Of a DNA stretch of 64,000 nt, positions 9,161-59,985 are shown piece by piece (the first letter of the stretch is position 1; every line of letters starts with the position of its first letter). A program made the position numbers and the translations under genes. The stretch spans positions 1-64,000 of the forward strand of contig NIVC01000672.1 in NCBI GenBank assembly GCA_002269645.1. Direction: 5' to 3'. The DNA comes from Macrostomum lignano. Its lineage: Eukaryota. The notes under the pieces are model-generated. The model did not search any database, was not told the DNA's origin, and worked only from the letters and a program-made list of their open reading frames with translations.

Positions 9161-10215
9161 TCGGCCGAGATGGTCAACACGTAATTGTCTTCAGCGTGTT
9201 AACAACTAGGCTGGCACTTCATACCCCTAAGTTTATACTCCTAAACATTATTAGTAGTCGTTGGCGGAGAACGAAGTACGCGAGCCGACGCATTCTAAGT
9301 GCCTCAGGCAATATTTAAAGAGCTTTTTGGTTAATACGAACTGTATATTTTGATCACAAAATATTTGTACAAAACGATAATTTTAGCGATATTAATTTAT
9401 AATAATTTTCATAGAGGTATCAAGTCTTAAAAAACAAATTCCGTATCTAAACGTTACATTAGCCCAATCAGTAGCTCTTTACTGTAAACCTTACAGTCTT
9501 TTTAGTACTTTTTCAATAAAACAATAATGTATAAATTTAATACCAACTAAACAGACAATATGTTTTTGGCTTATCTTAATTTACTATGCATTTCACAAAG
9601 TTTAAATTTTGTTTTAGCTATTGAACAATTTGATTTCGTTAATTCCTGAGTGAAAAACTTTGTGCTGCACTAATGTCAACGAGTTAAAGTTAGTTAATTA
9701 GGCCTAATTAGTATCAATAAAATCGAAACAGAAGCGAAACGTGTTATCTTGTACAAAATCTATATTTGCATTCTTGTGACCGTGTTTTGACTATTGTGTT
9801 AGTTATAAGAATCTGCCAAGATAATGTAAATGTTTGTTTATAGATAGTAAACTATTTGGACTATTGTATTTGTGTTGGTATCTTGATATATTTCTAGGCC
9901 AGACCTATTAGTCTAATCCCAACTTGTGTTAATAGATCTTAACATAAAAATTAGAGGACCTATTTATTGTGTAAAATTGGAAAATGAATAAAGCTGACTT
10001 ATTTGAAAACCTTCTCAAATGGGTAAGAATTGCTATAACTTTTTTTATTATTTATAATATTTATTTGTATTTTGTATTAAGCAACAATCCTCGATTTCAA
10101 TTTTAGGCCCCTAGTATTTTTGTGAATAAAGACTTCTAAGGCAAGGGTTTTGTTTTGTGAATAACTAGGGCCTATAACTATGGCCTAAGATAATTTTGAC
10201 TTTATTGAATATTAG

Positions 10216-10894
10216 CCATAGTCAAGAAGGTGGCAAGTGCACGCGGGAATCAATTTATGGAAAAATCCTTGGTGCACGCCAATATACGCCAATTTTTTAA
10301 AACCCTTAACATGACATTTCTGCTGCACGCCAAAAATCTTGAATACCAAAAATCATGTACGCCTCATGTACGTGTGATTTGAATATTAACCATATTAGAT
10401 ACTATTTTTAAATAAATTTTCTAATTACATTAAACAAAGTTTATATAAAAAAAGGAAATTCGCTACAAAGAACATAGTGAGTATCAAAAACTTTTTCTTC
10501 AAATTTCAAGAAACAAATAAACTAAAAGTCTACAAGAGTCACAAAATAAGAGCGTTTAAAAGTTATTGGATATTTTAATTTTAATGTAGGCTGTAGAGTG
10601 TAGGCCTGGCTGTAGCCTCAACTAGTTGGTTTAATAAATATTCAAATTCAATTGTTCACGTTTAACTTTATATATTGTATATATATATAGTGTATACATC
10701 TATATCTGACTTGTTGATATACTATCAGTTTGTAATTGCATGCCAAGGTTACACGCCAAGTAAAAAACTTGTACGCTGAAAATTTAGGCGTGGCTTGAGA
10801 CCCCTATTTGCACGCCAACTTTGCACGCCAAAATTTTAGTGTGGCTTGTGCACGCGGGAAAATTCCCGCGTGCAGGCCACCTTCCTGAGTATGG
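10216..10894. mobile_element. Non-autonomous DNA transposon (MITE), 679 bp, 8-bp TSD
   Basis: TIR CCATAGTCAAGAAGGTGGC vs reverse complement CCATACTCAGGAAGGTGGC, extended inward by TGCACGCGGGAAT; TSD AATATTAG at 10208-10215 and 10895-10902; subterminal TGCACGCC motifs at both ends. Confidence 0.8.
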
Positions 10895-12779
10895 AATATT
10901 AGCCTATATCAATACAATAGTATTTTTGCTCTGTATATTTTTGCTAGCCATTGTCATTGGTCAATTTTTTGTTATTATATATTAGAAGTTAATATATATA
11001 TAATAATCTATAATAGTATATAACATAACATATCCATAGTCCAGATCATGCTGGGTGCACATAAACAAAAATCCAATAATTACAAATGCATGCCAAAATA
11101 AACTAAGTGCATGCTCATTCTCAAAACTATATTAGTATTGTGACAGTAAATGACCTTTTTACATTGTGACAATAAATGACCCTTTTTGAATTGCATAATT
11201 AATCCTTTTTGGTAATGGTAGATCATTTGGTTAATTTTTCTGCTTTTTGGTAGTACTCTGTTTAGTAAAAAATGATACATACAAAAAATTGTTTAAATGC
11301 TTCATTATAAGCTTTAAAAACCCAGAAAGCTTAAAATTTATGTTAAAAAGGATTCTTTTCATTTTTTCATCTTTATAATAACTCTTGCACAATTCTACAA
11401 AGTGTATGCCAGGTATATACGCACATTATTTTCTTAGGAGTGATGCATGCCAATTGTGCATGCTTACTTTTGGCATACAAAGCAAATTTTTGGGCAGATA
11501 TTATATGATCTAAAGTGTGATAACATATATCACGTTTATATGTCAATACTAACAATAGTATATATGGAAAAAATGATAAAATAGATTTATTATATCATGA
11601 TACATAGTTATAGTATATCTTTTTATAGTGAATAAAGATAATCTAGTCTTTTTGTAAGATGCTTAGAAAAAGACCTTAAGGCCTAGTCATTATATCAATT
11701 TTGTCTTATTAGACTAGTTGTAATGGTTTAAATAAATGAGATAGAAGGTGGTAGTTCTTAGTTAATTATATTATTGAGAACAAGATAATAATGGGCCAAA
11801 ACAAAAGCTTGCAACCATTTGATAATGAGTGCTTTATACCTTTATATTTATAGCTTTTTGATAGAACATTCCAAAAAAAGAATGTTCTAGAAAGAGTTAG
11901 TGTAGGAATTTAAGTGATTATATTTATTATATATTAACGATTTAGTACGTTTAGATTTATTATAGAAATTTCTAGAATAAAACGTTTATTGCATAGTCAA
12001 AAAGTTTACAAAGGTTTATTACAAGGCCATCACAAGGGAAGATAGAAAAGGAGTCTTATAGCTAATCGTTTCATCATGATATCAGTTATAAATATGAGAT
12101 CTAAATAGTAAATCATTTTTCAAAGATAACCTAGGCATCATTTATATATTATTTGTGTTATTGGCCCATGTATATATTAGATATTTATTGTCATTAAGTG
12201 AGACAATAGCAAAGTATGTGCCAAAACAATTTGTTTGAGACAATCTATGTATCACTTATATACTATATGCTATTGTCCTATCTATGTATTATCTATATGC
12301 TGTTTTATTGTCCTAACCTTTTAGGCCAACAACTAAGACATTTCCATTATATAATAATATTTTATTAAGAAAATTAGGCCAATACACTTTGGTTTTAGAT
12401 TGGGTTTATGTTAAAAATCAAGAAATAAAAGAAATAGAAAAGCAGCTATATTAAAATTGCATTTAATATATTATATTTAATGGTGTTCTTTTAAGGCAAT
12501 TATAGATTATTAGTGCAATTGTGATTTGGGTTATCAATCACATTTGATTGGTTTCTAAATGAAAACTATACCTTCACATTGTTATTGAAGTGGATAATTA
12601 TCTGTGTCCTCGTGAGTAACTTGTGATTCATTTGTGATTGACAATGCTACATCATGGGTAACATTTTAAATGGCCAAGTACCAACTGACTTATAACATTG
12701 ATGTGTCATACATACTATTAAAATAGTACCCATAAGACAATAATAGTAATAAATTCACCATGCAATAATAAAATTGTAG

Positions 12780-15700
12780 TTGCAAACATTTGAGTGTGCA
12801 TCAGGAGTGAGCTCAGCCCTTGAACTGTCTGATGGAGTCATTATTGCCAAGACTCTCCACACCATGTGAGTAGTGCTTGCATTGAATCCTATATTATAGC
12901 TTTGTCTCAGCTTTGCCACATGTCTTGACAATTTACAATGCTGAACTACCTCTGCAGCTCTTCAGACTGCTTCAGTGAAGACTGGCTGTCAAAAATTAAA
13001 CCGGACTCTGGCAGCAATTGGCGATTGAAGGTGAGTTGCCACTAGAGAGTTGTCCTTTTGCAAGCTTGCATTTTCACTCATAGAGCTATAATTCTCACTC
13101 ATAAACTTGCATTTTTTACTCATAAGCTTGTATTTTCACTCATAAGCCTGCATTTTCACTCATAAGCTTGAATTTTCACTCATAAAGCTATGATTCTCAC
13201 TCATAGACTTGCATTTTCACTCATAAAGCTTGCATTTTCACTCATAGACTTGCATTTTCACCCATAAAGCTTGCATTTTCACTCATAAGCTTGTATTTTC
13301 ATTCATAAGCTTGTATTGTCACTCATAAGCTTGGATTTTTACTCATAAGCTTGGATTTTTACTCATAAGCTTGGATTTTTACTCATAAGCTTGAATTTTG
13401 ACTCATAAGCTTGTGTTTTCACTCATAAGCCTGCATTTTCACTCATCGTAAGCTTGAATTTTCACTCATAAGCTTGTATTGTCACTCATAAGCTTGTATT
13501 GTCACTCATAAGCTTGTATTGTCACTCATAAGCTTGTATTGTCACTCATAAGCTTGTATTGTCACTCATAAGCTTGTATTGTCACTCATAAGCTTGTATT
13601 GTCACTTATAAGCTTGTATTGTCATTCATAAGACTTGGATTTTCACTCATGAGCTTGTATTTTCACTCATGAGCTTGTATTTTCACTCATAAGGCTTGGT
13701 TTTTCACTCATAAGATGGACTTTTGCATTGCCAAAGGAAGTAGCAAGATTTGGGGATTTGACATTTATCTGCTCTCAACTCTTACTTTTTTAGAATGTTT
13801 TGTTGAGTTAGGAATTGGTATTGATGCGGGCGGCCGCTTCGTTAGTACAATTGTGGTCTTGCTGCCAACAGATGGCATCAGGTGCCCATTGTTGACTCAA
13901 AAGCCGGGCACTGCGTGCAGCTTTAAAGCCTACTGTGAATGCTCTGCAAGATTCAATATTTACCTAAGACTTTTCCACTCTAATATTGGAGATGCAAATC
14001 CGGAAAAATGAAGACATTATGCTATGATGAAGGCTTTTATTTAAAGTGCAGTTTTATTTCAGTTCAAGCGTTTCAGTTAATGGCATTTATCTTAGGCTGG
14101 GAAACTCCCAGCAGTCTGAAACGATTCGAGTGGAATTCAGTGAACGGAACTCGGCTCAGTCGCATCCGATGTCTTCCTCCTTGCTGTTGCCGAGGGAGCG
14201 CTTGCCGTATCTGAGGGTAGAGAATTTGATGCGGCAATGGCATTCAGTGATTTTGTTGCTACAAATACTGTATTAGTACGGCCGCAGCCTCACCTGGGCC
14301 TGGCCAGTGTAGCGTAGTGACCATTGAGACTGCGCAGGTACTGTCTGAGTACTTCGGGATCGTCGAATAGCGGCGGCAGCAGGTCATCCATATCCGGCTG
14401 CTGATGCTGCAGCGCCTGCCGCTGCGGGCTGGCAGAGCCGAGCTGGCCGCTCGTCGTCAGGACGGCTACCGCCAGGAGGAGCGCCACCACTGCTGACTGC
14501 ATTGGACACCGAACTGCGGGGCTGGCTAGAGACTGAGATGGAGAGATCGAGACTCCTGCTGCTGATGGAGCAGGGTAGCTTCAGTTCTTGCTGATGAGTG
14601 GCTGGGGATCCCAGTGAGTTCGGCTATTTATCAGCTACAGGCGGGCTGCCTGTTTGAGACAGTCGAGGGTTCGAGTCGGCGTTGGCGCAGCTGCTGCCGT
14701 CAGCAGCCTGCCTTCAACTGCCAGATCCGCCCTGCAGCCCCCTGACGGGCAGTAAATTGGATTGGGGGGGGGGGCACGCTGCTGCTGCAAGCGTCCTGCA
14801 TGCCCCCCCCCCCCAAGGTGTCGTCAGCACCTGGAGCCGGTCTGGCCAGCTGGCTGAGAGGTGCTAATTATTGAGTCAAAGCCATTCTTTGTTAATCACA
14901 AATTTTCTGCATCGGAATTTTCCTAGCATCTGTTAGCACCTGGCGGTATTGTTAGATTTATATATTCATGGCTGGCAGAGATCAGTGCTCCGAAATTCAC
15001 CCGGCCCGTCTCCCAGGTGAGCAACCTGAAGAAGATTGTGAAGGCTGTCCGAGACTTCTACTCGGACTGCTTGGACATGCACATCAACGACTTCGAGACG
15101 CCGGACATCAACAGCATCGGGGAGAGCGCCTCGCCTGACGAGCTGGGCGCCCTGCTGCAGCTGGTGCTGGGCTGCGCGGTGTCCTGCGCGGACAAGGAGA
15201 AGTACATCCAGCTGATCATGGGCATGGAGGAGCAGTTCCAGCAGAGCATCATGCTGGCTATCAAAGATGTGAGTTGCTGTGGCAGTGCCAGTTTATCTGT
15301 AGTGCGCAGAGTGTGCTGATTGAGCAGTTCCAGCAGAGCATCATGCTGGCTATCAAAGATGTGAGTTGCTGTGGCATAGCCAGTTTATCTGAAGTGCGCA
15401 GAGTGTGCTGATTGAGCAGTTCCAGCAGAGCATCATGCTGGCTATCAAAGATGTGAGTTGCTGTGGCAGTGCCAGTTTATCTGTAGTGCGCAGAGTGCTG
15501 ATTGAGCAGTTCAAGCAGAGCATCATGCTGGCTATCAAAGATGTGAGTTGCTGTGGCAGTGCCAGTTTATCTGTAGTGTGCAGAGTGCTGATTGAGCAGT
15601 TCCAGCAGAGCATCATGCTGGCTATCAAAGATGTGAGTTGCTGTGGCAGTGCCAGTTTATCTGTAGTGCGCAGTGTGCTCAGTAAACTGGCCGAGATTCC

Positions 15701-22258: not shown

Positions 22259-25200
22259 ATGCTGGCCCAACTGCGGATGCCCGCCCTGACCCGTCAGGCC
22301 GCCGGCCTGGCCAAGCAGTGCCGCTTGCGCCACTCGCTATCCGGCCGCTCGCCCATCGCCGCCTACTCAGCCGTGCCGGGCTCGCCTGCCGCCGACCCCA
22401 AGACTCGGCAGGACTTAAAATACGCGGAGAACGTGGTGGTGAAGCTGGGCAGCGCCGTCATCACCCGCGCCGATGAGTGCGGACTGGCGCTGGGCCGCCT
22501 CGCCTCCATTGTGGAGCAGATCTCCGACATGTGCCTGCAGGTGAGCACCGGTGTTAGTGCTTGCTGCTAGCTGTGACTCCCAGGCGGTGTACACCCTCCC
22601 AGCCATCAGCTGCAGTGCACACCCTCCCAGCCATCAGCTGTGAACATCCTCTCAGTCATCAAGTGTGTACATCTAGTCATCAGCTGTGTACACCCTCCCA
22701 GCCATCAGCTGTGTACACCCTCCCAGCCATCAGCTGTGTACACCCTCCCAGCCATCAGCTGTGTACACCCTCCCAGCCATCGGGTGTGTACACCCTCCCA
22801 GCCATCAGCTGTGCACACCCTCCCAGCCATCAGCTGTGTACACCCTCCCAGCCATCGGGTGTGTACACCCTCCCAGCCATCAGCTGTGTACACCCTCCCA
22901 GCCATCGGGTGTGTACATCCTCTCAGTCATCAACTGTGTACATCTAGTCATCAGCTGTGTACACCCTCCCAGCAATCAGCTGTGTACACCCTCTCAATAA
23001 AGAGTGCGCTTTCATTATTCATAAAACTGAGTTTATTAACATGCAGGGAAAGCACTGCGTGCTGGTCACCAGCGGCGCGGTGGCCTTCGGCAAGCAGAAG
23101 CTCCGCCAGCAGCAGATGATGAGCATGAGCATCGGCGAGACGCTTTCAGCCGACGTGAACTCGCGCCGGAAGGCCTTTCAAAGCCAGATCGACCCCAGGG
23201 CCTGCGCCGCCACCGGCATGTCCGGCCTCATGGCGCTGTACGAAGCGCTGTTCATGCAGTACGGCATCCAGACCGCCGAGATCCTGCTCACCAAGCCCGA
23301 CTTCGAGGACGCCAACTCGCGGGCCAACCTGCGGAGCACCCTGGCTGAGCTGCTGCAGCTGAACATTGTCCCCATTGTCAACACCAACGACGCGGTGGCG
23401 CCGCCGCCCAGACACGACTCCGATATGCAGGGCGTGCTGAGGATCCAGGACAACGACTCGCTGGCAGCCCGGCTGGCTGTTGAAGTCAACGCAGAATTGC
23501 TGATCATCATGAGCGACGTCAAGGTGAGTCTCGGTGTCCAGGCCGAACATGGCTGGTCTCAGATTCAGATTTTGTTTTTTTCGCTTTCATTTTCACCTTG
23601 CCGTTATCCGCCGATCCGGCAGGGCCTGTACACTTCGCCGCCAGACCGCGAGGACTCCCGCCTGCTGCACACCTTCAATCCGGACTTTGACAGCGCCATG
23701 CTGCAGTTCGGCAGCAAATCCAGCGTAGGCACGGGCGGCATGGAGTCCAAGGTCAAGGCCGCCCAGTGGGCCGTCCGCAAGGGCACCTCCGTGGTCATCT
23801 GCGAGGGCACGGCCGCCAACGTCATCCCCAGCGTGCTGAATGGCAAGAAGGTCGGAACCTTCTTCACTCTGGCGCCACCCGAGGGCGTCGGCGTGGAGCA
23901 GCAGGCGTGGGAGGCGCGGTCTGCCAGCCAGCAGCTGCAGGCCATGCCAGCCAACGACCGCGCCAGCGTCATCAGGAAGCTGGCCGACCTGCTGGTGAGC
24001 CTTGAATATTCTCCTTGTGAAAGTGAATGCTTTTGGCGACACGTGAAATTAAAGAACCTCTCAGAGCCCTGCATACAGACTGGCTGACCAGACGCCCCGC
24101 TCTCATCACGCAGATCGAGCGCCAGGCGGACATCCTGCTGGCCAACAGCCTGGACCTTGGCAACGCCACTGGCCTCAGCCCGCACCTGCTGGCCAGGCTG
24201 AAGCTCACGCCTGAGAAGCTGCAGGTGCTGGCCGACGGGCTGCGGCAGATCGCCGACTCCTGCCCCGGCCTGCTGGGCCGCGTGCTGCGCCGCACCAAAC
24301 TGGCCGAGGGCCTCAAGCTGGAGCAGGTGACCGTGCCGATCGGAGTGCTGCTGGTCATCTTCGAGTCCAGGCCCGACTGCCTGCCGCAGGTAGCCATTTT
24401 TACAGCTTAACTACTTTGATCTGTTTTAAGTTTAAGTATTCCGTGTCTCTGCGGCCACAATATCACCTGAATCACTGTAATCACCTGTAATTACCTACAA
24501 GCACTGTATTAGCCGGAAATCATCTGTCAGCACTGTAATCACCTGTAATAATCGGTAATAATCTGTAATCACTTGTAATCATCTGTAATCATCTGTAATC
24601 ACATGTAATCATCTGTAATCACCTGTAATCATCTGTAATCACCTGTAATCATCTGTAATCACCTGTAATCATCTGTAATAACCTGTAATCATCTGTAACC
24701 ATCTGTAATCACCTGTAATCATCTGTAATCACCTGTAATCATCTGTAATAATCTGTAATCACCTGTAATAATCTTTAATAATCTGTAATCACCTGTAATC
24801 ATCTGTAATAACCTGCAATCACCTGTAATCATCTGTAACCATCTGTAATCACCTGTAATCATCTGTAATCACCTGTAATCATCTGTAAATACCTGCAATC
24901 ATCTGTAATCACCTGTAATCATCTGTAATAACCTGTAATCACCTGTAATCATCTGTAATCACCTGTAATCGTCTGTAATCGTCTGTAATAATCTGTAACC
25001 ATCTGTAACCATCTATAATCACCTGCAATCACCGCCCCCCCCTAGGTGGCCGCCCTCAGTATCGCCAGCGGCAACGGCCTGCTGCTCAAGGGCGGCAGCG
25101 AGGCCCACCAGACGAACGGCGCCCTGCACCGCCTGGTGGAGGAGGCTGTCCGCGCCCACGGCCTGAGCCCCCGCCTGGTCGGGCTGGTGGGCGGCCGGGA

Positions 25201-28658: not shown

Positions 28659-31600
28659 ATGCTGGCCCGCCTGCGGATGCTCGCCCTGCCGCGCCAGGCC
28701 TCCTGCTGTCTGGCCTCTGTTCAGCGCTGCCGCCTGCGGCACTCGCTCTCGGGCCGCTCCACCATTGCTCCGTTCTCCGCTGTGCCGGCTGCCTTGGCCG
28801 TCGCCACGCAGCCGCCCAAGTCTCGGCAGGACTTGAAATACGCCGAGCACGTGGTGGTGAAGCTGGGCAGCGCCGTCATCACCCGAGCCGATGAGTGCGG
28901 ACTGGCGCTGGGCCGCCTCGCCTCCATTGTGGAGCAGATCTCCGACCTGTGTCTGCAGGTGAGCACCGGTGTTGGTGCTTGCACAATTCATCTCACCCTT
29001 TTCATCTAGTCTTCTATCTTGTAAACCAGTCCTCTATCTTGTACACCTGGTCCTCTATCTTGTACACCAGTCCTCTATCTTGTACACCTGGTCCTCTATC
29101 TTGTACACCTGGTCCTCTATCTTGTACACCTAGTATTTTATCTTGTACACCTATTCCTCTATCTTGTACACCTGGTCCTCTCTCCTGTACGCCCAATTTC
29201 CCCGACCTTTTCAATCAGTCACCGTCACCCATGAAATTTTTCAACAGGGCCGTCACTGCGTGCTGGTCACCAGCGGCGCGGTGGCCTTCGGCAAGCAGAA
29301 GCTCCGCCAGCAGCAGATGATGAGCATGAGCATCGGCGAGACGCTATCAGCCGACGTGAACTCGCGCCGGAAGGCCTTTCAAAGCCAGATCGACCCCAGG
29401 GCCTGCGCCGCCACCGGCATGTCCGGCCTCATGGCGCTGTACGAAGCGCTGTTCATGCAGTACGGCATCCAGACCGCCGAGATCCTGCTCACCAAGCCCG
29501 ACTTCGAGGACGCCAACTCGCGGGCCAACCTGCGGAGCACCCTGGCTGAGCTGCTTCGGTTGAACATCGTCCCCATCGTCAACACCAACGACGCGGTGGC
29601 GCCGCCGCCAAGCCAGGACTCGGACCTGCAGGGCGTGCTGAGCATCCAAGACAACGACTCGCTGGCAGCCCGGCTGGCTGTGGAAGTCAACGCCGACCTG
29701 CTGATCATCATGAGCGATGTCAAGGTGAGTCATGAATCTCACTGTTGGTAAGGTCTTATGTAGCATTTGCGCATCTGCCTACTCTAAGTAGAAATGTCAG
29801 TGTTTTAGTTAGTGATTTCACCCAATTTAACAATCCCAATCAGTGCCTATTCTCAAGCACCTCAGATATACCTGAGAATACTGCTTTGATTGAGCTCTGC
29901 TCTGCCATCCGCCCTTAGCTGCTCAGTGTTAGCACTGTGATGAACTTTTATTTATTAGAGAATGCACTTTGCTTAGTAGCCGTCAACGGCTGAGAATCCT
30001 ATTGATGTCTATGGACATTTGTACAGTTCAATTCGGTGGCTTAAAGAGTTGCCAAAATATGATTGAAAAGACCAAGTGTCTGCAGAGTTAAGCTAAAGGC
30101 TGAGACTCGATCAATTTTCTTACTCGTCCCAAAAAACGAACACTGGCGACGACGGCTGGTCTTATCGAGCCTCTGGAGACAGAAACCCCAGCGGAAATTG
30201 AGCGCTGGTTCCAACGCTTCGAAGCAGTTTCCAAGCTGAACAAGTGGGATGACACCGCTCAAAAGTTCGCCCTCATCGCACACCTCGGCAAGAAGGCCTT
30301 CGCACTGTTGGCGGATGCGCTATTGCCAGATAAGCCTGACGCCAAGACCTACGCTGATCTGAAAACTCAGCTGATCAAGGAGACGAAAGCGGCGAAATCC
30401 GAGATTGCATACCGGTACGCGTTCCATCACCTCAAGCAGGACGACGGCGAAGACGTTTCTGCCTACGCAAGAAGGCTGCGACTGGGTTCGGAGAACTGCG
30501 GCTTTTCAACCGCCGAACTGAATGGCCGCCTGCGGGACCAATTTATCTTCGGACTGTCGAACAAGGAGATCGTCAGAAAGTTGCTCACGGAGAAACTGAA
30601 AGATCTGACGTGGGAAAAAGTAACTACGGTGGCCAATGCATGCGAGGCCGTAAGTCGCGGCGAGAGACAAATCTCAGGAGGCGAAATTCTACATGTCAAG
30701 ACAGATCCTCCTTCGACATCGAAAGCCCAGAAGCCAGCGTACCAGAAAAGCGACCAGAAGAACGGCCAATTGCGCCAAGTCAAGTGCTTCTGCTGCGGCA
30801 AGGAAGGACATACAAAGGACCAGTGCCACCACCGGACTAAGACATGCCTTCAGTGTGGTAAGGTTGGTCATCTCAAAGCAGTTTGCAGGTGCGGACCGAA
30901 CAAAGGTGGACAACGGCCTTCAACGAGCAACAAATGGTCACAAGGAGGCGGACGGCATCCAAGGAGCAGAGTCAGAGCAATCGACGATGCAGCTGATCAA
31001 GTCGGGCACATTTTCTCGATGATGACGCCGGAAGATGGTCGTGGAAGCAGAAGGATAACGCGACATGTAGTAGTCAATGGTACGAAAATCAAGATGCTAC
31101 TGGACACCGGGTCGTGCTCAACGTTCGTGTCAAGCTCGGTGTTTCAAAGCCTACTCGAACCAGCAAATGTAAGGCCCACAAGCAGACGATTCGCTGCGTA
31201 TCAAGGGGATCCAGTGCTAGTGAAAGGCGAAGCTATTGTGAACGCCAAGCTAAACTCAGTAAGTTACGACCTAACTCTGTTTGTGGTGGACAACCCAAAA
31301 GCCGAATCTATCTATGGCCTAGATTGGATTGCTGCCCTTGAGCCAGACCTCTACACTTTTATTACAAAATGTACGGTGCCTGAGGAAGACGGCTCGAATC
31401 CTACAACGGCGTGCTCTGTAAAAAGATTTTCTGTATCATTGGTCATTGAGGCGGGAGCAAAGCCCATTTTTTTAAACCTCGGCAAATTCCATACGGGATT
31501 CAGGACGATGTCAAGGCCGAGTTGAAGAGAATGGAAGAGGCTGGACAGCTCTAGAAGGTGGAATCCAGCGAGTGGGCTACACCCAATGTCTGTGTTTGAA

Positions 31601-42910: not shown

Positions 42911-43615
42911 CAGGATCAACTTTCAGTCCGATCAAAGTTGAGGGGTGAGATTGGCTCTCATTAGGCGCAAATGGTATAACATGCCCCAAGCCAGCTGTGG
43001 TCAGACGCGAACTCAAACGTCAATGATTCTGCTTGCATCTTGCGAAAGCCAGGCGAATTCACGATTCCGTAGTCAGCCTGTGGGGTTGGGTTTTGCTGGC
43101 AGGTCTTTTACATGTACATGCGCAGGTGCTCAAAATTTTTTTAACTGTTTCTTGTACTAAAATAAATACATAGCTAGATTACCTCTTGAGAGGCGAATAT
43201 CCAGGCCTGTAAGGACTTGGCAAGATTCTCTAATGCACTAAAGTTTTCAGTATTCGACTTTCTAGTTACAAGATTCGGTTTCATATTACTCAGAAGTGCT
43301 GATTCACACGAAACTAATACCTATATTTGACAATAAGCAGTGGGGGGGCAGCCTGCAATTCTGAGAAAGCAAAGTACGAGCTACATTCTTGTCTCGCAGT
43401 CTATTTTTGTCCATCGCCGTCATACGGCTCGTAACATTCTATGCTGTACTTTGCAATGAGCTATAAATATCCAATTGTGCAATGAGGACAGAGTTGTACG
43501 AAATAAGTACTGGATTCACCTTCCAAAATTATTAAACTGTATATATATCGAGGTTGGCGGCTCTGCTTCAAACTCAGTTTTAAAGTTGATCAAATTCTCT
43601 GCTTAAAGTTCAGCC

Positions 43616-46600
43616 ATGTCCGAGCTGCCTTCAAGTGTGTCGGCAGCGACCCCAGTTTATGATCTACCGGCGCACCTGCAGTGCAGCAGCTGCTCCAAGC
43701 CGCTCTTCAACGCCCGACAGACTCCGCACGGGTGCCGCCTGTGCCAGGCCTGCGTCACCGGCCTGCTGCACGAGGTGGAGAAGCGGCCCTGTCCCGGACA
43801 CACCGAGGCCTGCACACTCAGAGACCACCACTCGGAGGAGGACGGGGGCGGCGAGGTCGAGATCGAGGTGAGCCGGGCTACCTGCTTTCCCGACATGGCG
43901 ACGAGACGCGAGGTCGCCAAGCTGCGAGTCCGCTGTCCGAACTGCGACGCCGGCTGCTCTGTCCAACTCGAATGGGCTCGCATGGACCAGCATGTGCAAC
44001 AGAGCTGCGACTGGCACTCACTCCGCTGTGAGCAGTGCAAAGAGCTCATTCTGAAGAAGGACATGCAGCGACACACCAGCAGCGAGTGTCGCCACAGGAA
44101 GGAGACCTGCGACCTGTGCTCTCAGCTGGTCACACAAAGCGAGATGGAGACCAGTCACAGGAATCTGCAGTCCGATGTGTGCTGTCCGAGATTCTCAGCT
44201 CGCTGTCCTCACTGCTCGGAGCGGAGCACACCGATGGACAGGCGGGGATATGTTGCTCACCTGTCGGAGTGTCCCGAGAGACCGGTAGAGTGCAAGTACT
44301 CTCACCTGGGCTGCAGGGCGATGGTGCGCAGGTCCGATCTGGAGAGGCACTACAGGGAGAGCGTGGACTCTCACCTTGAGCTCATGGACTCGAAACTCAA
44401 GCAGGCAGCGATAGCTCAGCAGAGTCCTGGTGAGATTTTTTTTCAAAAGTGATGCGTCATGCAGAGGCTGCCATATTCAGATTTGGAATCACATTTTACA
44501 TTTTTACAATCATTCATTCTCCAGCCGCCGCAGCTACCACCGGCACCGCCGACGGTGGCGAGGTGGCCGACGTGAAGAGGCGAGTCGGCAGCGTCTTCGA
44601 GCAGTTCAAGAAGCTGCAGGTCAACGTGGCAAACTGGGCTCACAGCACCATGGAGCTCGAGCAGCTGGCTGACAGGTTCGGAGGCGTCTCGCAGCTGCGG
44701 ACTCTGCTGAGCGGACTGGACGAGCGTACGAGGAGCGTCGAGCAGCTGCAGCAACAGGTGCAGCAGCTCCAGCAGCAGGTGCAGCGGGGGCCTACGGCCG
44801 ACCTTCAAGAGGTGCCCCTGTTCTTAACTAACGGACCGTACCACCACCGAGCCTGCGAAGAAGACCAAGAGAACGCGTCGAACTCCGAAAACCTTCTATC
44901 CGTCATGCGACTCCGCGGCGGCAACAGTGATATCTCAGTCCACCGCCGCCGGCCGCGTAGGAGACACAGGAGAGCAGCGTCGCGCAAAGCCGAGCCGGTC
45001 CAAGAGCTCCTCGTGCAGTTTAACTGCAATGGCATCAAAAGCCGTAATACGGAGCTGGCCCACAGGCTGGCCTCCCTGCGCCCCGCCGCTATACTCCTTC
45101 AGGAAACCAAGCTTAAGAAAGAAGAAGATTATAACCCGCCGCGGGGATACGTGGTGGCCTCCAGGGAAGACGGAGTGCATAACGCCGGCCCCGATGACCG
45201 CGCTGTCGTGACACCTGCTCACCCAAATCGGCCACCCGACACTGACGGTACAGGCACCGCCGGGACACGACGCCGTACCAACCCGCGCTGCCGGCTGAGA
45301 TTCCCAGGACTCCGCGAAAACTGGTGCGCCGGATGTCGCAGCGGCCGTACCGCCTGCAGCGTCCGTTTCACACCATGGCATGGCGCAGACAACCAATCTG
45401 TTCAAACCAGTGCATCCGGACGAGAAACCACCAGCACGCCACCGCCAGCCCAGTCCACTATCCCAAAAACCAACAAAAAAATTACAGGACGGGGAGGTAC
45501 TATGGTGCTCGTCCGCGATGACGTCCAGTACGACAGACTCAAAGTCGATAGAGAACACGACCTCCTGGACGTTGCCACCTGCCGCATCCGCCTCAAAGGA
45601 CAGCAGCCGATCGTGATAGCATCTATCTATGCACCACCATCCAGCTGCCAACGTCCCGATAACACCTGGCAACCCAGCTTCACCAATCTCCCGACTACCG
45701 GTAGAGTCATCCTCGGAGGCGACTACAACGCACACGGAAGCTGGGACCGCCACATTGATGAAGATCTCAGAGGCCAGACCGTCGACGAGTGGGTCGCCCG
45801 CAATGGGCTCGTCATCTGCAATACCACCTGCCACACACGCACCTGCCCCAGTACTGGCCGCCTCAGTAGCCCAGACGTGACCATCTGTAGTAGCACCATT
45901 GCCGGATCCATCACGGACTCCTGGAAGACGCTACCAGACTGGGGAAGCGATCACCTGCCGATCGTTTTCGGCCTCCCAGCCTCTAACACCGGAAAGACCC
46001 GTCACTGCGGGCAAAAACGCTGGATCTATAAGAAGGCAGACTGGGGAGCCTTCAGGGAGTCGCTAAATACCTGGGCAGAATCCGAAAGCAACGACACCAC
46101 CTTAAACACAGAGGCCACACGCCTTGCCGAAGCCATCCTGAACGCAGCAAGACTTGCCATCCCGCGCAGCTCCGGGAAAGAGACGAGACGCCTGCCGTTC
46201 TGGAACGACGCCTGCGAAGAGGCCTCCAAAGCTACACGTTCCGCGAGACAATCCGCAGAAAAAGAACCGACACCAGAAAATATTATTGCCGCAAACAGAG
46301 CCCGCCACAACGCCTCAGGCTGTCTCCGGAGGGAGAAAAAAGCCTTCCTGTTCGACAAAGCGGCAAATTTCAGCCAGGACTCGGACATTTTTGGCTTACT
46401 CCGCGCACTGAGAGGCGATGGTTTTAAAACTCCGGACCCGGCTGCCATCGTCAGGGCCGCCTCCCCAGACTCGCCGGAGCGCACCGCCCGCACTAACAAA
46501 GAGAAGGCCGAACTCTTTTGCCAACTCTACGCCGAAGTTAGCCGAGTCCCCAGACGGAAAAATGACTCGGCCATCAGATACGAAGCGAACGAGGCCACCA

Positions 46601-49175
46601 CGCCTATGGGTGACCCCCAAACAGACGGCCCGGACGCCCCTTTCGAGATCGACGAGCTCCGCGCCGCTATCCGATGTCTCAAATCAGGGAAGGCTGTGGG
46701 AACCGACGGTGTCTCCAACGAGATGCTTAAACGCCTCCCGCCGGCCGCTGACAAAGCCTTACTCAGCCTCATCAACCGCACCTGGCGGGAGGGCAAAACA
46801 CCGACCAGCTGGCGAATTGGCACTATTATACCGATCCAGAAAAAAGGGAAAGACGCCGCATCACCGGATAACTACCGCCCCGTCGCACTTACCAGCTGCA
46901 TCGCCAAGTGCGCGGAGCGCATGGTTCTGGCTCGTCTTAATTATGATCTGGAGAGCCGTGGCGGCCTCACGCCCACTCAAGCTGGTTTTCGTCGCGGTCG
47001 TAGCACCGAGGAACAGCTCGCGCGAGTCTGCCAAGCCATCTTTGACGGCCTCGAGAGTCTACCGGCGCTACGCAGCATCCTCTGCCTCCTCGACTTCTGC
47101 CGAGCGTATGACAGAGTCTGGCGCCTGGCCCTGTATGCCAAAATGCACCGCATGGGCATCCCCAAGCGCATCATCCGCTGGATCCGCGGCTTCCTGTCGG
47201 ACCGTCACAACGCAGTCCGCTGGGTTAACGCCACGAGCCGCAACAGAGTCTTCCGCGAAGGTCTGCCACAGGGCAGTGTGCTAGCGCCCACGCTGTGGAA
47301 TATCTATGTCAACGATTTAGCCCAAGCAGTCGCCGAGGCGAACCCTTTGGTTAGCCTCAGTCTCTACGCCGATGACTCGGCCTTACTGGCGACCGCTCGC
47401 ACACTCGACATCTGTGCCAGAGAACTCCAACCAGCCCTGGATGCAGTGGCCGACTGGTGCCGAGATTGGAAAGTCTCCATTAGCACTGGGAAATGCTGCT
47501 ACTCCACCTTCACTCTAGCGGCAAATGAAAACAACGGCAAACGGAGAGTGAACCTCCAGATCAACGGCGACAAGCTTGCCTTCGATCCAACACCGACCTT
47601 CCTGGGACTCACTCTTGACGACAGCCTAAGTTTCAGCCACCATGCATCAAAGATCCGTAAAAAGATGGCCGCCCGCAGAAGACCTCTCACTGCCCTCGCT
47701 ACCAGATCGGCCGGTGCGGACAGTCAGATCCTCCGCATGGCTTACATCGCCACCGTTCGCTCTGCTGCCGACTACGCGTGCGGGGTCTGGGGGTCTTTCA
47801 CTGCAGCCAGCTCTAAGCTGCTGATCGACCGCCAACAGCACAGCTGTGCGCGGATCATCACTGGGTGCCTCCAACTTACTCACATCCGGGACCTGCTTGC
47901 GGTGGCGAACCTGTCGCCCTTCAGCCACCTGGTGCTACAACGTAGTGCGACGCTCAGAGAAAGAATCCTACGTCTCCCGCAGGACACTCCAGCACTTCAG
48001 GTCGCCAAAATGGACACCCGACCACGACTGAAGAATCGAGCCTTTGAGAGCCACCAGAGAACACCGAGAGACCCAAAGGACATCGTCACCGTCCTCCACG
48101 ACTACCAGCGAGAACACCGTGGTTGCTGGCGCCGCGTTAGCCAAGAGCTCGACAGACAGGGGCTGCTCAACGGCCCCACCAGGGAGCCCGCTCCGCAGCT
48201 CCAGCCGCCGTGGACGGCCCACGAAGCGATCACCTTCGACCTCAGTTTGGCTACGCAGTGCAGCCGCAGCCAGCCCCAGAGCCTCCGCAGCGATACTGCA
48301 CTGAGGTACCTCGAGGAGCGCGGCTCCCACCCGGTCAGCGTTTGGACTGACGGCTCGGCCGCCGGCGGCACATCGGACGGCACCAGCGCAGCGGTGATCA
48401 TCACCCCATGCTGGGGTCGGGTCGTCACCAGCGCTGCAGGGAACATCTGCAGCAGCACCCAGGCGGAACTTCAAGCCATACTGCTTGCCATCCAGAATAC
48501 CAGAGAGCATCAATGTATCGACATCTTCACTGACTCCCAGGCGGCCATTTACAACATCATGGCGAGCCAGCGCAGCAACAGCAGAATCGTCTCCGAAATT
48601 TGGAACCAGAGTAGCGATCACTCCATCCGCATCACCTGGATACCGGCTCACTGCGGCATCCCCATGAACGAACGCGCAGATAGGGCGGCAAGACTGGCGA
48701 CCGCAGATCAGAGCGACCATGGTGTCCCCATCATGGCAGCCAGCGCTTACCTCTGCCGGGAAAGACGTGATCTAGACCTCGAGCTTTGGGGCCGTAAGGC
48801 GCCATGGCCAAGACTCCCAACCTTGCCGAGGAAATTTGAGGTCCTGGTCAACCAGCTCCGCGCCGGCTGCAGCAACCTTGCCGCCGCCACTAGACTCCGA
48901 CTCGGCCTGTCCGACTCCGACGTGTGCCCGGACTGCGGAGCTCGCGACACCGAGCAGCACATTCTTTTCGACTGCCCACGTGGGTTCGCGGCCCGCCCCG
49001 GCGAACAAGACGCACTCCTGGTTGACGCGAGCCTCACCATCAACCTTCTTCGCAGGCTGGGGCGCATCTAGCGCCCCCGTCTCTTGCAGCTCAGCTGACA
49101 TCGAGACGTGCGGTGCAGAGAGAGAGAGAGAGAGAGCAGGTGCAGCAGCTGCAGCAACAGCAACAGCGACCCTAA
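43616..49175 (+). CDS. TRAF-like copy B, interrupted in its last exon by a LINE and fused in frame to the LINE ORF (predicted 1786 aa)
   Basis: Exon 43616-44429, intron 44430-44524, exon from 44525 open to TAG at 49069-49071. The orphaned host tail CAG GTG CAG...CGA CCC TAA lies at 49137-49175. TATA at 43540. Confidence 0.82.
44786..44840 (+). ncRNA. Predicted HDV/CPEB3-like self-cleaving ribozyme at the LINE 5' end
   Basis: P1 GGGGGC/GCCCCT with G1-U wobble; P3 ACC/GGT; L3 TTCAAGA; P1.1 C44806-G44820; short P4 TT-CTT-AA; J4/2 CTAA (C44828); P2 TACGGCCG/CGG(A)CCGTA. Folded by hand. Confidence 0.72.
44786..49134 (+). mobile_element. Full-length single-ORF non-LTR retrotransposon (APE-RT-RNase H-CCHC; Ingi-like, I group)
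   Basis: TSD AGCAGGTGCAGC at 44774-44785 and 49135-49146; (AG)10 tail. APE QFNCNG/LQETK/GDYNAH/SPDVT/GSDHLPI; RT NYRPVAL/QAGFR/LDFCRAYD/GLPQGSVLAP/LYADD (47365-47376); RNase H WTDGS/QAEL/FTDSQ/WIPAH/NERAD; terminal CPDC...HILFDC. No stop or frameshift. Confidence 0.93.
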
Positions 49176-50255
49176 TTTAGCTGTCCTAGTGATCTCACCT
49201 GGACTTTTTCACCTGGAATTCGGTGTAGCTCACATTTTGATATTCTCTCGCTGAACAGCATCTGTGGGATGGTTGCTGTATTCATGCTTACCTGCTGGTG
49301 CTGGCGCTCCACTTATTTTTAGAACTCTGATATTCGTTGTTAATTTTTGTAGGAACAAAATTTAACTGTCTTTTTCTTTGTTTGCTGCGCATTTCTCCTG
49401 GTTTCCACTTACTCACCCGGTGCTTTTTTGGGTTCCACCCTGGTGACTCTTTTGTGGTTTTCCGCCTTCTTATACTCGTAGCGTTGGATACAATCGAAAT
49501 GTCTGTAAAGCGTGCTTTATATAATTCTGAGTAGATGCTACTACACGGTTGGCATAGAATTCTTTACTACTCAAGTGAAGAAATGAAGAAATCTGTATGA
49601 AAAGTCTTGTTTTATTTTTACTTTGTTACTTTTTATAGCGCTGCATCGTATTTAACCGAGGCACTTAGCTTAACACTAAGTGGAAACTTCACAGGCAAGA
49701 TATATTGTGCCTAATTTCAGTTAAGCCACAAACTGTTCACTTGGTTTTTTCGGTTTATTTAAAAAGAACAGGAAACGAGTATATAAAACATAGGATTAAC
49801 AGACTAATTGTATGCAGCGTTAGTCAGAGACATTGAGTATGTTGCAATAGTCAAGTTACATTGAGACAGTTCACTCTTTCGGATTGAAGACAAACGAACA
49901 GTTCTTGAACTCGCATCCGGTTCCATGGAAGTTGGTCAGCGGTGCTACTTTTCAACTTGGCAAATCGGGCAATCGGTCTCCATGCTCAAACATCGGCATG
50001 GCATGGCGATTGGCATGATCAGCAAGATTGTCTTGTTCAGGAAGTCTAAATGAACCTCAGTAGCTGGTCATCGTTGGCTTCATTCCGTTCTCGCATGCTA
50101 AGATCGCTGAGAAAACTGACCTCACAGCCGGATAAGCCGTCAATGGAGTCAGTTGGAAGATTTGCCCAGTTAATCATGATATCTTTAAGTCTATTCTTGC
50201 ATTCCAATTAATTCATGATGACGATGCTGGTGCCCGTGCTATAGATTAAAGAGCA

Positions 50256-50289
<34 letters not shown>

Positions 50290-50334
50290 TAGGAGTCAGG
50301 AGTCAGGAGTTACGAGTCAGGAGTCAGGAGTTAC

Positions 50335-50373
<39 letters not shown>

Positions 50374-50593
50374 TACGAGTCAGGAGTCAGGAGTTACGAG
50401 TCAGGAGTCAGGAAACAGGAGTCAGGAGTCAGGAGTTAGGAGTCAGGAGTTAGGAGTCAGGAGTCAGGAGTTACGAGTCAGGAGTCAGGAGTCAGGAGTT
50501 AGGAGTCAGGAGTCAGGAGTCAGGAGTTACGAGTCAGGAGTTAGGAGTCAGGAGTCAGGAGTCAGGAGTTAGGAGTCAGGAGTCAGGAGTTAC

Positions 50594-50625
<32 letters not shown>

Positions 50626-50674
50626 TACGAGTCAGGAGTCAGGAGTTAGGAGTTAGGAGTCAGGAGTCAGGAGT

Positions 50675-50709
<35 letters not shown>

Positions 50710-50779
50710 TAGGAGTCAGGAGTTAGGAGTCAGGAGTTAGGAGTCAGGAGTCAGGAGTTACGAGTCAGGAGTCAGGAGT

Positions 50780-50814
<35 letters not shown>

Positions 50815-50912
50815 TACGAGTCAGGAGTTAGGAGTCAGGAGTCAGGAGTTACGAGTCAGGAGTCAGGAGTCAGGAGTTAGGAGTCAGGAGTCAGGAGTCA
50901 GGAGTTAGGAGT

Positions 50913-50947
<35 letters not shown>

Positions 50948-51073
50948 TAGGAGTCAGGGGTTAGGAGTCAGGAGTCAGGAGTCAGGAGTTAGGAGTCAGG
51001 TGTCAGGAGTCAGGAGTCAGGAGTCAGGAGTTAGGAGTCAGGAGTCAGGAATCAGGAGTTAGGAGTCAGGAGT
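50256..51073. repeat. Heptamer satellite (AGGAGTC/AGGAGTT/ACGAGTC)n, about 115 units
   Basis: About 820 bp of 7-bp tandem units. Confidence 0.97.
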
Positions 51074-54604: not shown

Positions 54605-55957
54605 TCAGGCCCGATACGAGCTTGAAGGCTGCGCGGCCTGCAGCTGTTGCACTTGGTGCTGAAGCTGCTGCACCTGCTGCTGCAGCTGTTCAAACTGCCT
54701 TGTGCGCTCATCGAACAATCTGAGCAGGGTTTGCAACTGTGAGATGCCTCCCAAAGACTCAACCAACTTCTCAAACATGACGGTCCTGTGAGCCCAGTCG
54801 GAAACGCCTTTCTGCAGCGCCTTGAACTTGCCGTAGATGTTGCCGACCTGCCGGTTCATGGCGGCCGCTTCGGGGATGTCAGCGGGCCGGACAGTCGGCT
54901 GCGCGACTGCGGCTGTGGAAGAGGAGGTTGGCAACGAACTTGTATGGGGCTTTCGAGTTACTAATTGGTTCTGCTGATCGCAGCTAGAAAAGCAGCTATT
55001 GTATCTGCTACTCTGGTAGTGATAAAATTATGATTCATTAAGCGCAGCTTTGTAACACAACACTTTTTGTTATTTACTAGTAATTTCGAAAATAGCAACA
55101 AAAAACTGTCAAACTACTTCAACTAGCAGCTTAAAACTTACTATGGCTATTTTGAGCTATCGCTGCCTGCTTGAGTTTCGAGTCCATGAGCTCAAGGTGA
55201 GAGTCCATGCTCTCCCTGTAGTGCCTCTCCAGATCGGACCTGCGCACCATCGTCCTGCAGCCCAGGTGAGAGTACTTGCACTCTTCCGGTCTCTCGGACA
55301 CTCCGACAGGTGAGCAACATATCCCCGCCTGTCCATCGGTGTGCTCCGCTCCGAGCAGTGAGGACAGCGAGCTGAGAATCTCGGACAGCACACATCGGAC
55401 TGCAGATTCCTGTGACTGGTCTCCATCTCGCTGTGTGTGACCAGCTGAGAGCACAGGTCGCAGGTCTCCTTCCTGTGGCGACACTCGCTGCTGGTGTGTC
55501 GCTGCATGTCCTTCTTCAGGATGAGCTCTTTGCACTGCTCACAGCGGAGTGAGTGCCAGTCGCAGCTCTGTTGCACATGCTGGTCCATGCGAGCCCATTC
55601 GAGTTGGACAGAGCAGCCGGCGTCGCAGTTCGGACAGCGGACTCGCAGCTTGGCGACCTCGCGTCTCGTCGCCATGTCGGGAAAGCAGGTAGCCTGGCTC
55701 ACCTCGATCTCGACCTCGCCGCCGCCGTCCTCCTCCGAGTGGTGGTCTCTGAGTGTGCAGGCCTCGGTGTGTCCGGGACAGGGCCGCTTCTCCACCTCGT
55801 GCAGCAGGCCGGTGACGCAGGCGTGGCACAGGCGGCACCCGTGCGGAGTCTGTCGGGCGTTGAAGAGCGGCTTGGAGCAGCTGCTGCACTGCAGATGGGC
55901 CGGTACAGCGGAGACCGGCCGGGCTCCCGACACTCGCTGGGGCAGCTCAAAGGCCAT
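54605..55957 (-). pseudogene. TRAF-like copy D; 1-nt deletion near 55297 and a diverged coiled-coil exon
   Basis: Exon 55957-55142 is nearly identical to C/B but reads TGTCCGAG instead of TGTCCCGAG. Donor GTAAGT at 55141; probable exon 54960-54605 encodes RQVGNIYGKFKALQKGVSDWAHRTVMFEKL...QQQVQQLQ. Confidence 0.72.
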
Positions 55958-58290: not shown

Positions 58291-59985
58291 ATGGATTCAA
58301 GACAGGGTAGATTGTCTAAGAGAAAAAGGCTGGGCTCCGCAAGTGCAACCGCACGCTCCTCAATGCAGCACGCCTCACCGATATCCTCGTACCTGACCCA
58401 GTTCGCTGCCGAATCGTCCATTCGATCGCTACGTCGGACGGTTCATTCAGACAGCGCCCTGCTGCGCGCGTTCTGGACCTGCTTTGTGCTGGCCTGCTTT
58501 GTGGGCATGACCTGCCACCTGACGCTGCTGACTCTGAACTTTGTCAAGGGCGACCTGGTTGTTGATCTGCACTTTGCTTCCAGCGCGAACCAGCCATTCC
58601 CCAGCGTGTCCTACTGCGACGGGACGCGCTTGAGTCAAAGCGCCCTCAGTTACCTGTCGGCCGGCCGAGTCCTCACTCCGGCCGAATTTTCTAGCCACGT
58701 TCGCAATCGCGTGCAGAAGTTCTATCTGAAGCATCCAAGCGCTGACAGAGGCTTCCTGCTGCTCATCGAGAGCTTCAGAAACTACATAGCCACTGTGCTG
58801 GGAACCCTGTCGCGGGCCAATAGAAGTTTGCACGAAGTCTCCAGTCTGGGAGCAAGCATCGGGGCGCCCATCATTCGCATGCTGCAGGTGACAGGAAGAG
58901 TGATCTGGCTGGTGCCCAGCGATTACACTCTCGTGCCATTCCACCATCCAGACTACCTAAGCTGCTACACAGTGACTTTGCCAGCCGCAATGTCCAAGCT
59001 CACCCAGTCAATTGTTCTGGTGATTCCGACCGCTCCGGTCGCAGCAAACGCCACCAACTCGTCAACTGACAATCATTTTTCAACTGGATTCCCCATCGAC
59101 GGTCTCACTTCCACCAATGGCTTTGTTTTCGACCTGCACAGCGAGTTAGAGGTGCCCTTTACCCACAACAGACTGCTACTGCCAAGCAACTACTACAACC
59201 AGGTGAAGTTCACTCAGAGTAGGCTGCAAAGGCTGAAGTGCAACAGCCTGTCTGGATGGTCGACAGAGTACCGCGTAGACAACGGAACGGTGCGGCACCG
59301 GCACTTTAAGTACACAAAAGAGATGTGCATAGTGCAGGCGATTCGCAAAGAAGTGCATCGGCGATGCAACTGCACTCTCGACATCGGCCTGTTGAACCTG
59401 ACGGACCGCACGATGCGATGCAACGCTTTCACACCAGACGACTCAGTTGAAGCTTTCTCCAAAAGGGACTTCTGCGTTGACGACGTCCTGAGCTCGTCTC
59501 AGGTCTACGATGAAAACTGCGAGAGCTCCTGCCGAGAGTTCTGGTTCCCGGCCACGGTCTCGGGTGCCAGCTACGTCCCCATGAATGATCTCCAGCGCTG
59601 CGTGATGGAGCAGGCCATCTACGAGGTCAACTACCAGGGCGCCGGGATCTCGGATGTCGAAGCCGCCCTGCTGACCAACGCCAGCTCGAAGAGTTCAGCA
59701 GACAAGCTTTGCTCCAACGTCTCTCGACCACGGGCCTTCATGGCCGAGCTAAGCAGAAACCCCTTCATGCTGCAGAGCTTTCGCCAGACTCCAATCACCA
59801 CTCCGGCGGTCTTCCTGTGCCAGGTGGGCAGCATCTGCGGCATCTGGTGCGGGCTGTCAATCGCGATCATCGCCGAGCTGGTCGACCTGTTGTACAGGCT
59901 GGCGGGCTCCCGGCGGAAGGCGACTTGCTCCTCCGTGGGTTCGCTACCACTGACTGTGACGCAAGTGTCAAAAACAGTGGCGTAA
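58291..59985 (+). CDS. Intronless DEG/ENaC (amiloride-sensitive channel family) subunit, 564 aa
   Basis: TM1 RAFWTCFVLACFVGMTCHLTLL, post-TM1 FPSVSYC, Cys-rich ectodomain (YTKEMC...CNC, CESSC), TM2 FLCQVGSICGIWCGLSIAIIAELVDLL with GxS filter. Confidence 0.85.
   Translation: MDSRQGRLSKRKRLGSASATARSSMQHASPISSYLTQFAAESSIRSLRRTVHSDSALLRAFWTCFVLACFVGMTCHLTLLTLNFVKGDLVVDLHFASSANQPFPSVSYCDGTRLSQSALSYLSAGRVLTPAEFSSHVRNRVQKFYLKHPSADRGFLLLIESFRNYIATVLGTLSRANRSLHEVSSLGASIGAPIIRMLQVTGRVIWLVPSDYTLVPFHHPDYLSCYTVTLPAAMSKLTQSIVLVIPTAPVAANATNSSTDNHFSTGFPIDGLTSTNGFVFDLHSELEVPFTHNRLLLPSNYYNQVKFTQSRLQRLKCNSLSGWSTEYRVDNGTVRHRHFKYTKEMCIVQAIRKEVHRRCNCTLDIGLLNLTDRTMRCNAFTPDDSVEAFSKRDFCVDDVLSSSQVYDENCESSCREFWFPATVSGASYVPMNDLQRCVMEQAIYEVNYQGAGISDVEAALLTNASSKSSADKLCSNVSRPRAFMAELSRNPFMLQSFRQTPITTPAVFLCQVGSICGIWCGLSIAIIAELVDLLYRLAGSRRKATCSSVGSLPLTVTQVSKTVA

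Follow-up and report, generated by a model that had tools for sequence, protein, structure and literature searches.

Introduction

Long interspersed elements (LINEs) can insert de novo into coding exons, as the human L1 did in exon 14 of the factor VIII gene. An event of the same kind was recognized in a 64,000-nucleotide stretch of the Macrostomum lignano genome (scaffold NIVC01000672.1, positions 1–64,000, assembly Mlig_3_7, GCA_002269645.1), hereafter called the window. One copy of a TRAF-like gene, designated B, has a coding exon that is interrupted by a LINE flanked by a target-site duplication, and as in the earlier cases this amounts to a mutational event in a single allele or copy. It differs from them in that the element is full-length, intact, in sense orientation and in frame, and in that the target is one of at least seven near-identical paralogs, which probably kept the cost to the host small. 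We concluded, with a probability of roughly 0.85, that the B::LINE arrangement resulted from a recent chance insertion, sense and in frame, of an active full-length LINE into a redundant TRAF-like copy. On this view the fusion was neither selected nor fixed.

Host domains joined in frame to an enzyme of a transposable element are known from SETMAR and CSB-PGBD3. Fusions of this type arose mostly by splicing into the open reading frames (ORFs) of DNA transposases; they are fixed and conserved, and their mobility features have been lost. B::LINE is like them in the in-frame joining, however none of those traits (fixation, conservation, lost mobility features) was seen in it. Some LINEs are co-transcribed with host genes and are either released by a 5' hepatitis delta virus (HDV)-like ribozyme, such as R2 and L1Tc, or translated via an N-terminal 2A peptide. 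The LINE in the window shares with them a short stop-free 5' leader and the sense orientation within a gene, but it showed no Rfam ribozyme match (E ≤ 10), no NPGP motif and no special fold of the leader.

In the order of its apurinic/apyrimidinic endonuclease (APE), reverse transcriptase (RT) and RNase H domains and in its C-terminal CCHC motif, the element resembles the RNase H-bearing APE-type LINEs (the Drosophila I factor; I, Nimb, Ingi, Tad1 and LOA), the likeness being one of domain layout. The 3' tail of the Drosophila I factor is (TAA)n. As in the I-like LINEs, the element in the window ends in a short simple repeat and not in poly(A), and it has a target-site duplication and a stem-loop in the 3' untranslated region (3'UTR). 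It differs from them by the lack of ORF1, which is found in many, though not all, LINE clades, and by an insertion of ~105 aa with a Cys motif in the APE domain. It has no long terminal repeats (LTRs). A literature search on the clade of the element returned nothing specific.

The interrupted gene is comparable to the TRAF E3 ligases (TRAF6, TRAF5), with which it shares an N-terminal RING-like motif, TRAF-type zinc fingers and a Q-rich C-terminal segment. It differs by having no MATH/TRAF-C domain, whereas a MATH domain is present in other TRAFs of M. lignano (P0021, P0022). M. lignano is a free-living flatworm, the genome of which is repeat-rich and partly duplicated, with 180 Mb in duplicated blocks (PMC5730564).

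Results

Insertion boundaries and reconstruction of the empty site

The alignment of B with the four other paralogs of the window (A, C, D and E) ended exactly at position 44785 in all four cases, and the host sequence of B was picked up again 3' of the LINE. Both copies of the 12-bp target-site duplication, AGCAGGTGCAGC, matched perfectly. When the LINE and one copy of the duplication (44786–49146) were deleted, a 367-aa protein was obtained that ended in QQLQQQQQRP before its stop codon. The reconstructed empty site read ...QQQVQQLQQQQQRP followed by the stop, and it aligned column for column with the uninterrupted paralogs. The LINE sits 9 codons before the stop of B (49147–49175), the first of these codons being split by the insertion and the last being the stop itself. 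This count agreed with the displacement of about 10 host codons that had been claimed in an earlier examination of the letters of this DNA, referred to below as the sequence-only reading.

The 5' boundary of the element was uncertain by 4 nt, since CAGC could be assigned either to the element or to the target. The same LINE with an identical 5' end is carried at another locus by P0001 (UniParc UPI0007A11279), a 1632-aa model that most likely derives from an earlier M. lignano assembly. P0001 also has Q-R-G before the common leader peptide, hence CAGC may be element sequence and the duplication may be 8 bp long; the 12-bp and the 8-bp readings reconstruct an identical empty site. At the other end, the (GA)n tail shares the AG at the start of the duplication, a microhomology that is expected if the RNA tail of a LINE pairs with the nicked target. 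The perfect duplication, the exact empty site, the end made of a hairpin and (GA)n, and the intact APE, RT, RNase H and CCHC motifs mark the locus as the product of a genuine transposition event.

It was proposed that the insertion took place by target-primed reverse transcription. The bottom strand would have been nicked next to the AG, at a site able to pair with the (GA)n tail of the RNA, reverse transcription would have proceeded to the 5' end of the LINE RNA, and second-strand cleavage 12 bp (or 8 bp) away would have produced the duplication.

Reading frame across the junction

An ORF of 1540 aa is present in the window at 44449–49071 (+). Joining exon 1 (43616–44429) to 44525–49068 resulted in 1786 codons with zero internal stops, closed by TAG at 49069–49071. 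The predicted protein carries RING, zf-TRAF, coiled-coil, APE, RT and RNase H parts in this order, and the predicted peptide at the junction of host and LINE is ...QQQVQRGPTADLQEVPLFLTNGPYHHR. The position of the intron was the same as in the transcript-based GenBank models of the paralogs, P0018 and P0020, where ...AIAQQSP and AAA... meet at the junction. Translation to 49071 without an internal stop thereby bore out both the sense, in-frame insertion in copy B and the 1786-aa frame through 44429/44525, as given in the sequence-only reading.

According to the proposed course of events, the element would have landed in sense orientation near the end of B, and its leader happens to be free of stops in the frame of the ORF, which allows the host frame to continue directly into that of the LINE. 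The allele would be expected either to lose the normal function of B or to make a read-through transcript, and the LINE protein would most likely be made from the element's own transcript, starting at the ATG at 44905. A TATA promoter had been ascribed to the TRAF-like gene. What was found is only a TATA-like motif at 43540, a putative promoter, and similar motifs also occur 5' of paralogs A and E.

Anatomy of the LINE

The catalytic motifs of the APE domain (N..QETK, GDYNAH and SDH) were read directly. As direct reading and Pfam both recovered APE, RT and RNase H (Table), the claim that all catalytic motifs of the LINE are intact held. With these three activities encoded, the element is apparently autonomous. 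A gag-like ORF1 is absent, just 119 nt lying 5' of the single LINE ORF. The hairpin in the 3'UTR folded with −24.3 kcal/mol (z = −2.1).

The insertion of ~105 aa in the APE domain (45175–45486) lies between the QETK and GGT motifs and carries C-x11-C-x2-C-x6-C (CRLRFPGLRENWCAGCRSGRTAC). Both the insertion and its Cys motif are kept in the 38%-identical relative P0027, where the motif reads CRARFPNQPEEWCGGCSKKKKC, and both are also found in P0001. Most other relatives of the LINE align only from just 3' of this insertion. It is possible that this LINE lineage has a zinc-binding module here.

Relatives and age of the LINE family

An exhaustive profile search returned ~8,900 relatives at E ≤ 1e-30, the nearest being 35–38% identical. 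These nearest relatives were environmental proteins on contigs of ~4.5 kb, with the same APE-RT-RNase H layout as the element in the window. In the best relative, P0027, residue 24 aligned with residue 54 of the query that included the leader, and the ORF started 23 residues before the first aligned position, compared with 14 residues for the ATG at 44905. The P0027 ORF thus starts at about the position of ATG 44905, and therefore the leader peptide has no counterpart in P0027. In some of the 35%-identical relatives (P0028, P0035) a PHD finger is found at the N-terminus, and in one an OTU protease domain separates RT from RNase H; both are missing from the LINE in the window.

P0001 differed from the LINE in the window by 8 substitutions in ~1,060 aligned residues, one frameshifted stretch and three deleted segments being left out of the comparison. 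It was the one further copy seen at the protein level, and none was present in the 77 kb and 27 kb of DNA that were compared. Given the near-identity of P0001, the perfect duplication and the intact ORF, the LINE family is very young and probably still active.

In-frame arrangement, leader and the P0001 model

A 39-codon stretch with the composition of the leader was free of stops in 27–31% of shuffles, and the chance of a sense and in-frame landing, given an open leader, is 1/6, the value that had also been put forward in the sequence-only reading. On these figures the in-frame arrangement is no more than chance. Open by chance this often and not aligned in the nearest relative P0027, the leader reads as non-coding.

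The sequence-only reading had also spoken of an uncleaved mRNA. No ribozyme was detected in an Rfam scan of 44600–45200 at E ≤ 10, which returned just two chance matches (one long non-coding RNA model and one small nucleolar RNA model), and the scan of the whole window at gathering thresholds gave 0 matches. The leader folded no better than its shuffles (z = +1.3). An HDV-like or other 5' ribozyme was rejected by these scans and by the leader fold, and a 2A "skipping" peptide in the leader (..FLTNGP..) by the lack of an NPG(P) motif. The idea of an uncleaved mRNA thus found no support in a ribozyme, an exceptional fold or a 2A motif.

Whether P0001 represents a second, independent case of in-frame insertion into an exon was considered. 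The similarity of its host part to the secreted Cys-rich protein A0A1I8G7C1 ends with the exon, at "...INYMPP", after which 36 unrelated codons precede the LINE. These extra codons, together with the internal deletions and the frameshifted stretch, ruled it out as such a case, and its upstream fusion is most likely a read-through or gene-model artefact. Since P0001 owes its database entry solely to the length of its ORF, an ascertainment bias, it was not counted as evidence of a frame bias.

Host gene, paralog array and the duplicated locus

In exon 1 of B, Pfam recognized zf-TRAF (3e-11); the RING domain was not called by Pfam. Residues 21–181 aligned with the RING-zinc-finger structures of TRAF6 and TRAF5 at ~1e-10 (TRAF6 3hcs residues 19–156). 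The database matches of the reconstructed B protein were only TRAF-type proteins of M. lignano, 77–96% identical to it. Two GenBank loci reached through these proteins overlap the window and agree with it at every base. Pfam gave no MATH/TRAF-C match in B, and the reconstructed protein stops after the Q-rich segment; the label "TRAF-like" was therefore used.

B belongs to an array of RING/zf-TRAF genes without a MATH domain, tandem and inverted, with at least 7 copies in 77 kb. Their coding parts are 92–99% identical, while the introns and flanks diverge, and gene conversion within the array is suggested by this pattern. In copy D, a 1-bp deletion near 55295 shifts the frame.

A second scaffold, NIVC01001049.1 (281841–308565), is collinear with positions 34600–63200 of the window at 92–99% identity and represents a duplicated or homeologous locus. 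In place of 43167–49667, that is, of all of B and the LINE, there is a 26-bp satellite, (AAGAAACTGGCGCCCCCCCCTCTAAA)n, at that locus, and rearrangement has also affected the neighbouring copies. The TRAF copy found there in inverted orientation is a mosaic of the D and C types. NIVC01001049.1 was rejected as an empty-site allele, since the whole of B is missing and the inverted TRAF copy is not B, and it is uninformative for genotyping. Compared with the window, it also shows structural variation within the array. From the absence of B at the duplicated locus and the at least 7 copies of the array, it followed that B is dispensable or was recently gained. Judged by these sequences, B is a redundant member of a gene array that varies in copy number.

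Gene models and database records

The GenBank models P0020 (39577–53509) and P0018 (54605–67298) are chimeric: exons from separate paralogs are combined in them over 9–14 kb, and the first of them skips copy B and the LINE entirely. Transcripts overlapping repeats were removed before the Mlig_3_7 annotation was submitted to GenBank (PMC5730564); as a result, the annotation says nothing on a B::LINE transcript. The GenBank models were rejected as evidence against B::LINE expression on account of this filtering and of the chimeric local models. Exact-sequence look-ups of ORFs of the window (1540, 1539, 1388 and 278 aa), and a look-up of the P0001 contig in public assemblies, found nothing on record.

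Table. Coordinates of copy B, the inserted LINE and the other paralogs of the array.
Feature	Position	Strand	Basis and remarks
TATA-like motif	43540..43546	+	~70 nt 5' of the ATG of copy B; motif only, putative promoter
Exon 1 of TRAF-like paralog B, RING-like C3HC3-type motif and TRAF-type zinc fingers	43616..44429	+	Pfam, structure match, protein identity
Intron GT..AG, 95 nt, phase 1	44430..44524	+	junction as in annotated paralog proteins P0018, P0020
Host part of exon 2, Q-rich, CAG-rich, presumed coiled coil	44525..44785	+	aligns with all paralogs to 44785
Target-site duplication, left copy, AGCAGGTGCAGC	44774..44785	+	sequence read
Full-length single-ORF LINE, 4,349 bp, 60% GC	44786..49134	+	one copy only within 77 kb of scaffold
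LINE 5' leader, 119 nt	44786..44904	+	stop-free in ORF frame only; joins host frame to LINE frame
LINE ORF, 1,388 aa and stop	44905..49071	+	first ATG in element at 44905; P0027 ORF starts at equivalent position
APE-type endonuclease domain	45013..45966	+	Pfam Exo_endo_phos_2 3.4e-14, Exo_endo_phos 6e-8
Reverse transcriptase domain, YADD at 47365–47376	46834..47538	+	Pfam RVT_1 1.4e-32; human L1 ORF2p RT 1e-13 (PDB search)
RNase H domain, residues D, E, D, H..D	48334..48699	+	Pfam RNase_H 1.9e-16; E. coli RNase HI 6e-8 (PDB search)
C-terminal CCHC motif (CPDCGARDTEQHILFDC)	48925..48975	+	direct reading
LINE 3'UTR: hairpin 49071–49116, then (GA)n tail 49118–49134	49072..49134	+	folding; direct reading
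Target-site duplication, right copy, AGCAGGTGCAGC	49135..49146	+	sequence read
Displaced C-terminus of B, (Q)LQQQQQRP and stop TAA (49173–49175)	49147..49175	+	empty-site reconstruction
TRAF-like paralog A	39584		self-comparison
TRAF-like paralog C	52315		self-comparison
TRAF-like paralog D	55948	-	self-comparison
TRAF-like paralog E	61734	-	self-comparison
TRAF-like paralog F, just past the window	67298	-	located by protein match only
TRAF-like paralog G, just past the window	75353	-	located by protein match only

Other features of the window

Two ORFs with a glutamate-5-kinase (P5CS-type amino-acid kinase) domain were found at 22957–24084 and 29143–29748; they are probably exons of duplicated P5CS genes. 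A P5CS-type gene flanks the TRAF-like array at the duplicated locus too. An intronless ORF of 564 aa at 58291–59985, between copies D and E, belongs to the DEG/ENaC (amiloride-sensitive sodium channel) family. Mobile-element ORFs at 546–1865 and 30308–31525 comprise a P-element/THAP9-like transposase (TNP-like RNase H fold) and an LTR-retrotransposon gag-aspartyl protease. The window also contains an AT-rich block at 10001–14000, with a GC content of 29–34% as against ~50% elsewhere, and at 50256–51073 an 818-bp satellite with a 7-bp unit, GGAGTCA, and ~90% matches.

Discussion

The uninterrupted frame of B::LINE could be explained in ways other than a recent chance insertion. It is conceivable that the LINE family exploits host transcription, either by means of a stop-free leader that allows fusion translation or by release from the host pre-mRNA, for example through spliced-leader trans-splicing, in which case sense, in-frame exonic copies would be a strategy and not an accident. 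The shortness of the leader (just 119 nt) and the lack of ORF1 fit such a habit, as does the upstream ORF that runs in frame into the LINE 5' end in both copies seen (2/2, the copy in the window and P0001); the leader also has CTAAC followed by AG dinucleotides, a direct reading that is speculative in this context. Trans-splicing occurs in 38.8% of M. lignano genes (PMC5730564). However, an open leader is expected by chance in ~30% of cases, the leader peptide is not conserved in P0027, and no ribozyme or 2A motif was found. The P0001 copy is ascertainment-biased, its LINE begins 36 codons past the exon end of A0A1I8G7C1, and it carries deletions and a frameshift. Exploitation of the host was thus considered quite unlikely. 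A newly born or domesticated chimeric gene, in which a RING-TRAF-RT protein of 1786 aa would be produced and serve the host, would account for the uninterrupted frame, the intact domains and the TATA-like motif upstream. Yet the duplication, the 3' tail and the near-identical mobile copy indicate that the LINE has not aged since its insertion, and the fusion is carried by no paralog and not by the duplicated locus. No protein of this architecture occurred among the relatives listed in the searches, and Pfam, run on only five of them, found RING or TRAF domains in 0/5. Such a gene was judged very improbable. As little credence was given to an assembly artefact, in which a LINE read would have been wrongly joined to a TRAF paralog. 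Repeats and redundancy are extensive in Mlig_3_7, with its 180 Mb of duplicated blocks (PMC5730564), and the paralogs are >92% identical, but a mis-join would not yield a perfect 12-bp duplication of the exact target, a base-exact empty site, a clean 5' end common to another copy or a complete 3' tail, and the window contains no N bases.

Three points weigh against the chance insertion that we prefer. The upstream ORF of P0001 also runs in frame into the LINE 5' end, so there is a slight chance that the family habitually forms open-leader fusions. Neither AATAAA nor ATTAAA was found in sense between 43616 and 49700, so read-through transcription across the LINE is possible. The age and frequency of the insertion were inferred from sequence intactness alone. 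On the other side stand the perfect duplication, the near-identical second copy, the uninterrupted paralogs, the absence of B from the duplicated locus and the unconserved leader, all of which favoured the recent accident over the domestication that the sequence-only reading had weighed against it. It would be a long shot that transcripts from the B promoter read through the LINE and are translated into a 1786-aa protein combining RING, TRAF zinc-finger and coiled-coil parts with an active endonuclease, RT and RNase H, or that the family systematically uses the stop-free leader or spliced-leader trans-splicing for expression from host genes.

As it stands, B::LINE is a textbook young LINE insertion, and both the LINE and the exonic insertion are of known kinds. 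The chimeric gene models of the TRAF-like array are a warning to users of the annotation. If the read-through fusion were real, it would represent the initial stage in the birth of a host-LINE chimeric gene; expression of the fusion, or a frame or orientation bias of the family, would offer a rare view of a host domain joining a LINE reverse transcriptase. The insertion marks a LINE family that is currently or was recently active in the regeneration model M. lignano, and it provides an intact reference copy of this family, including the unusual conserved Cys-motif insertion in its endonuclease.

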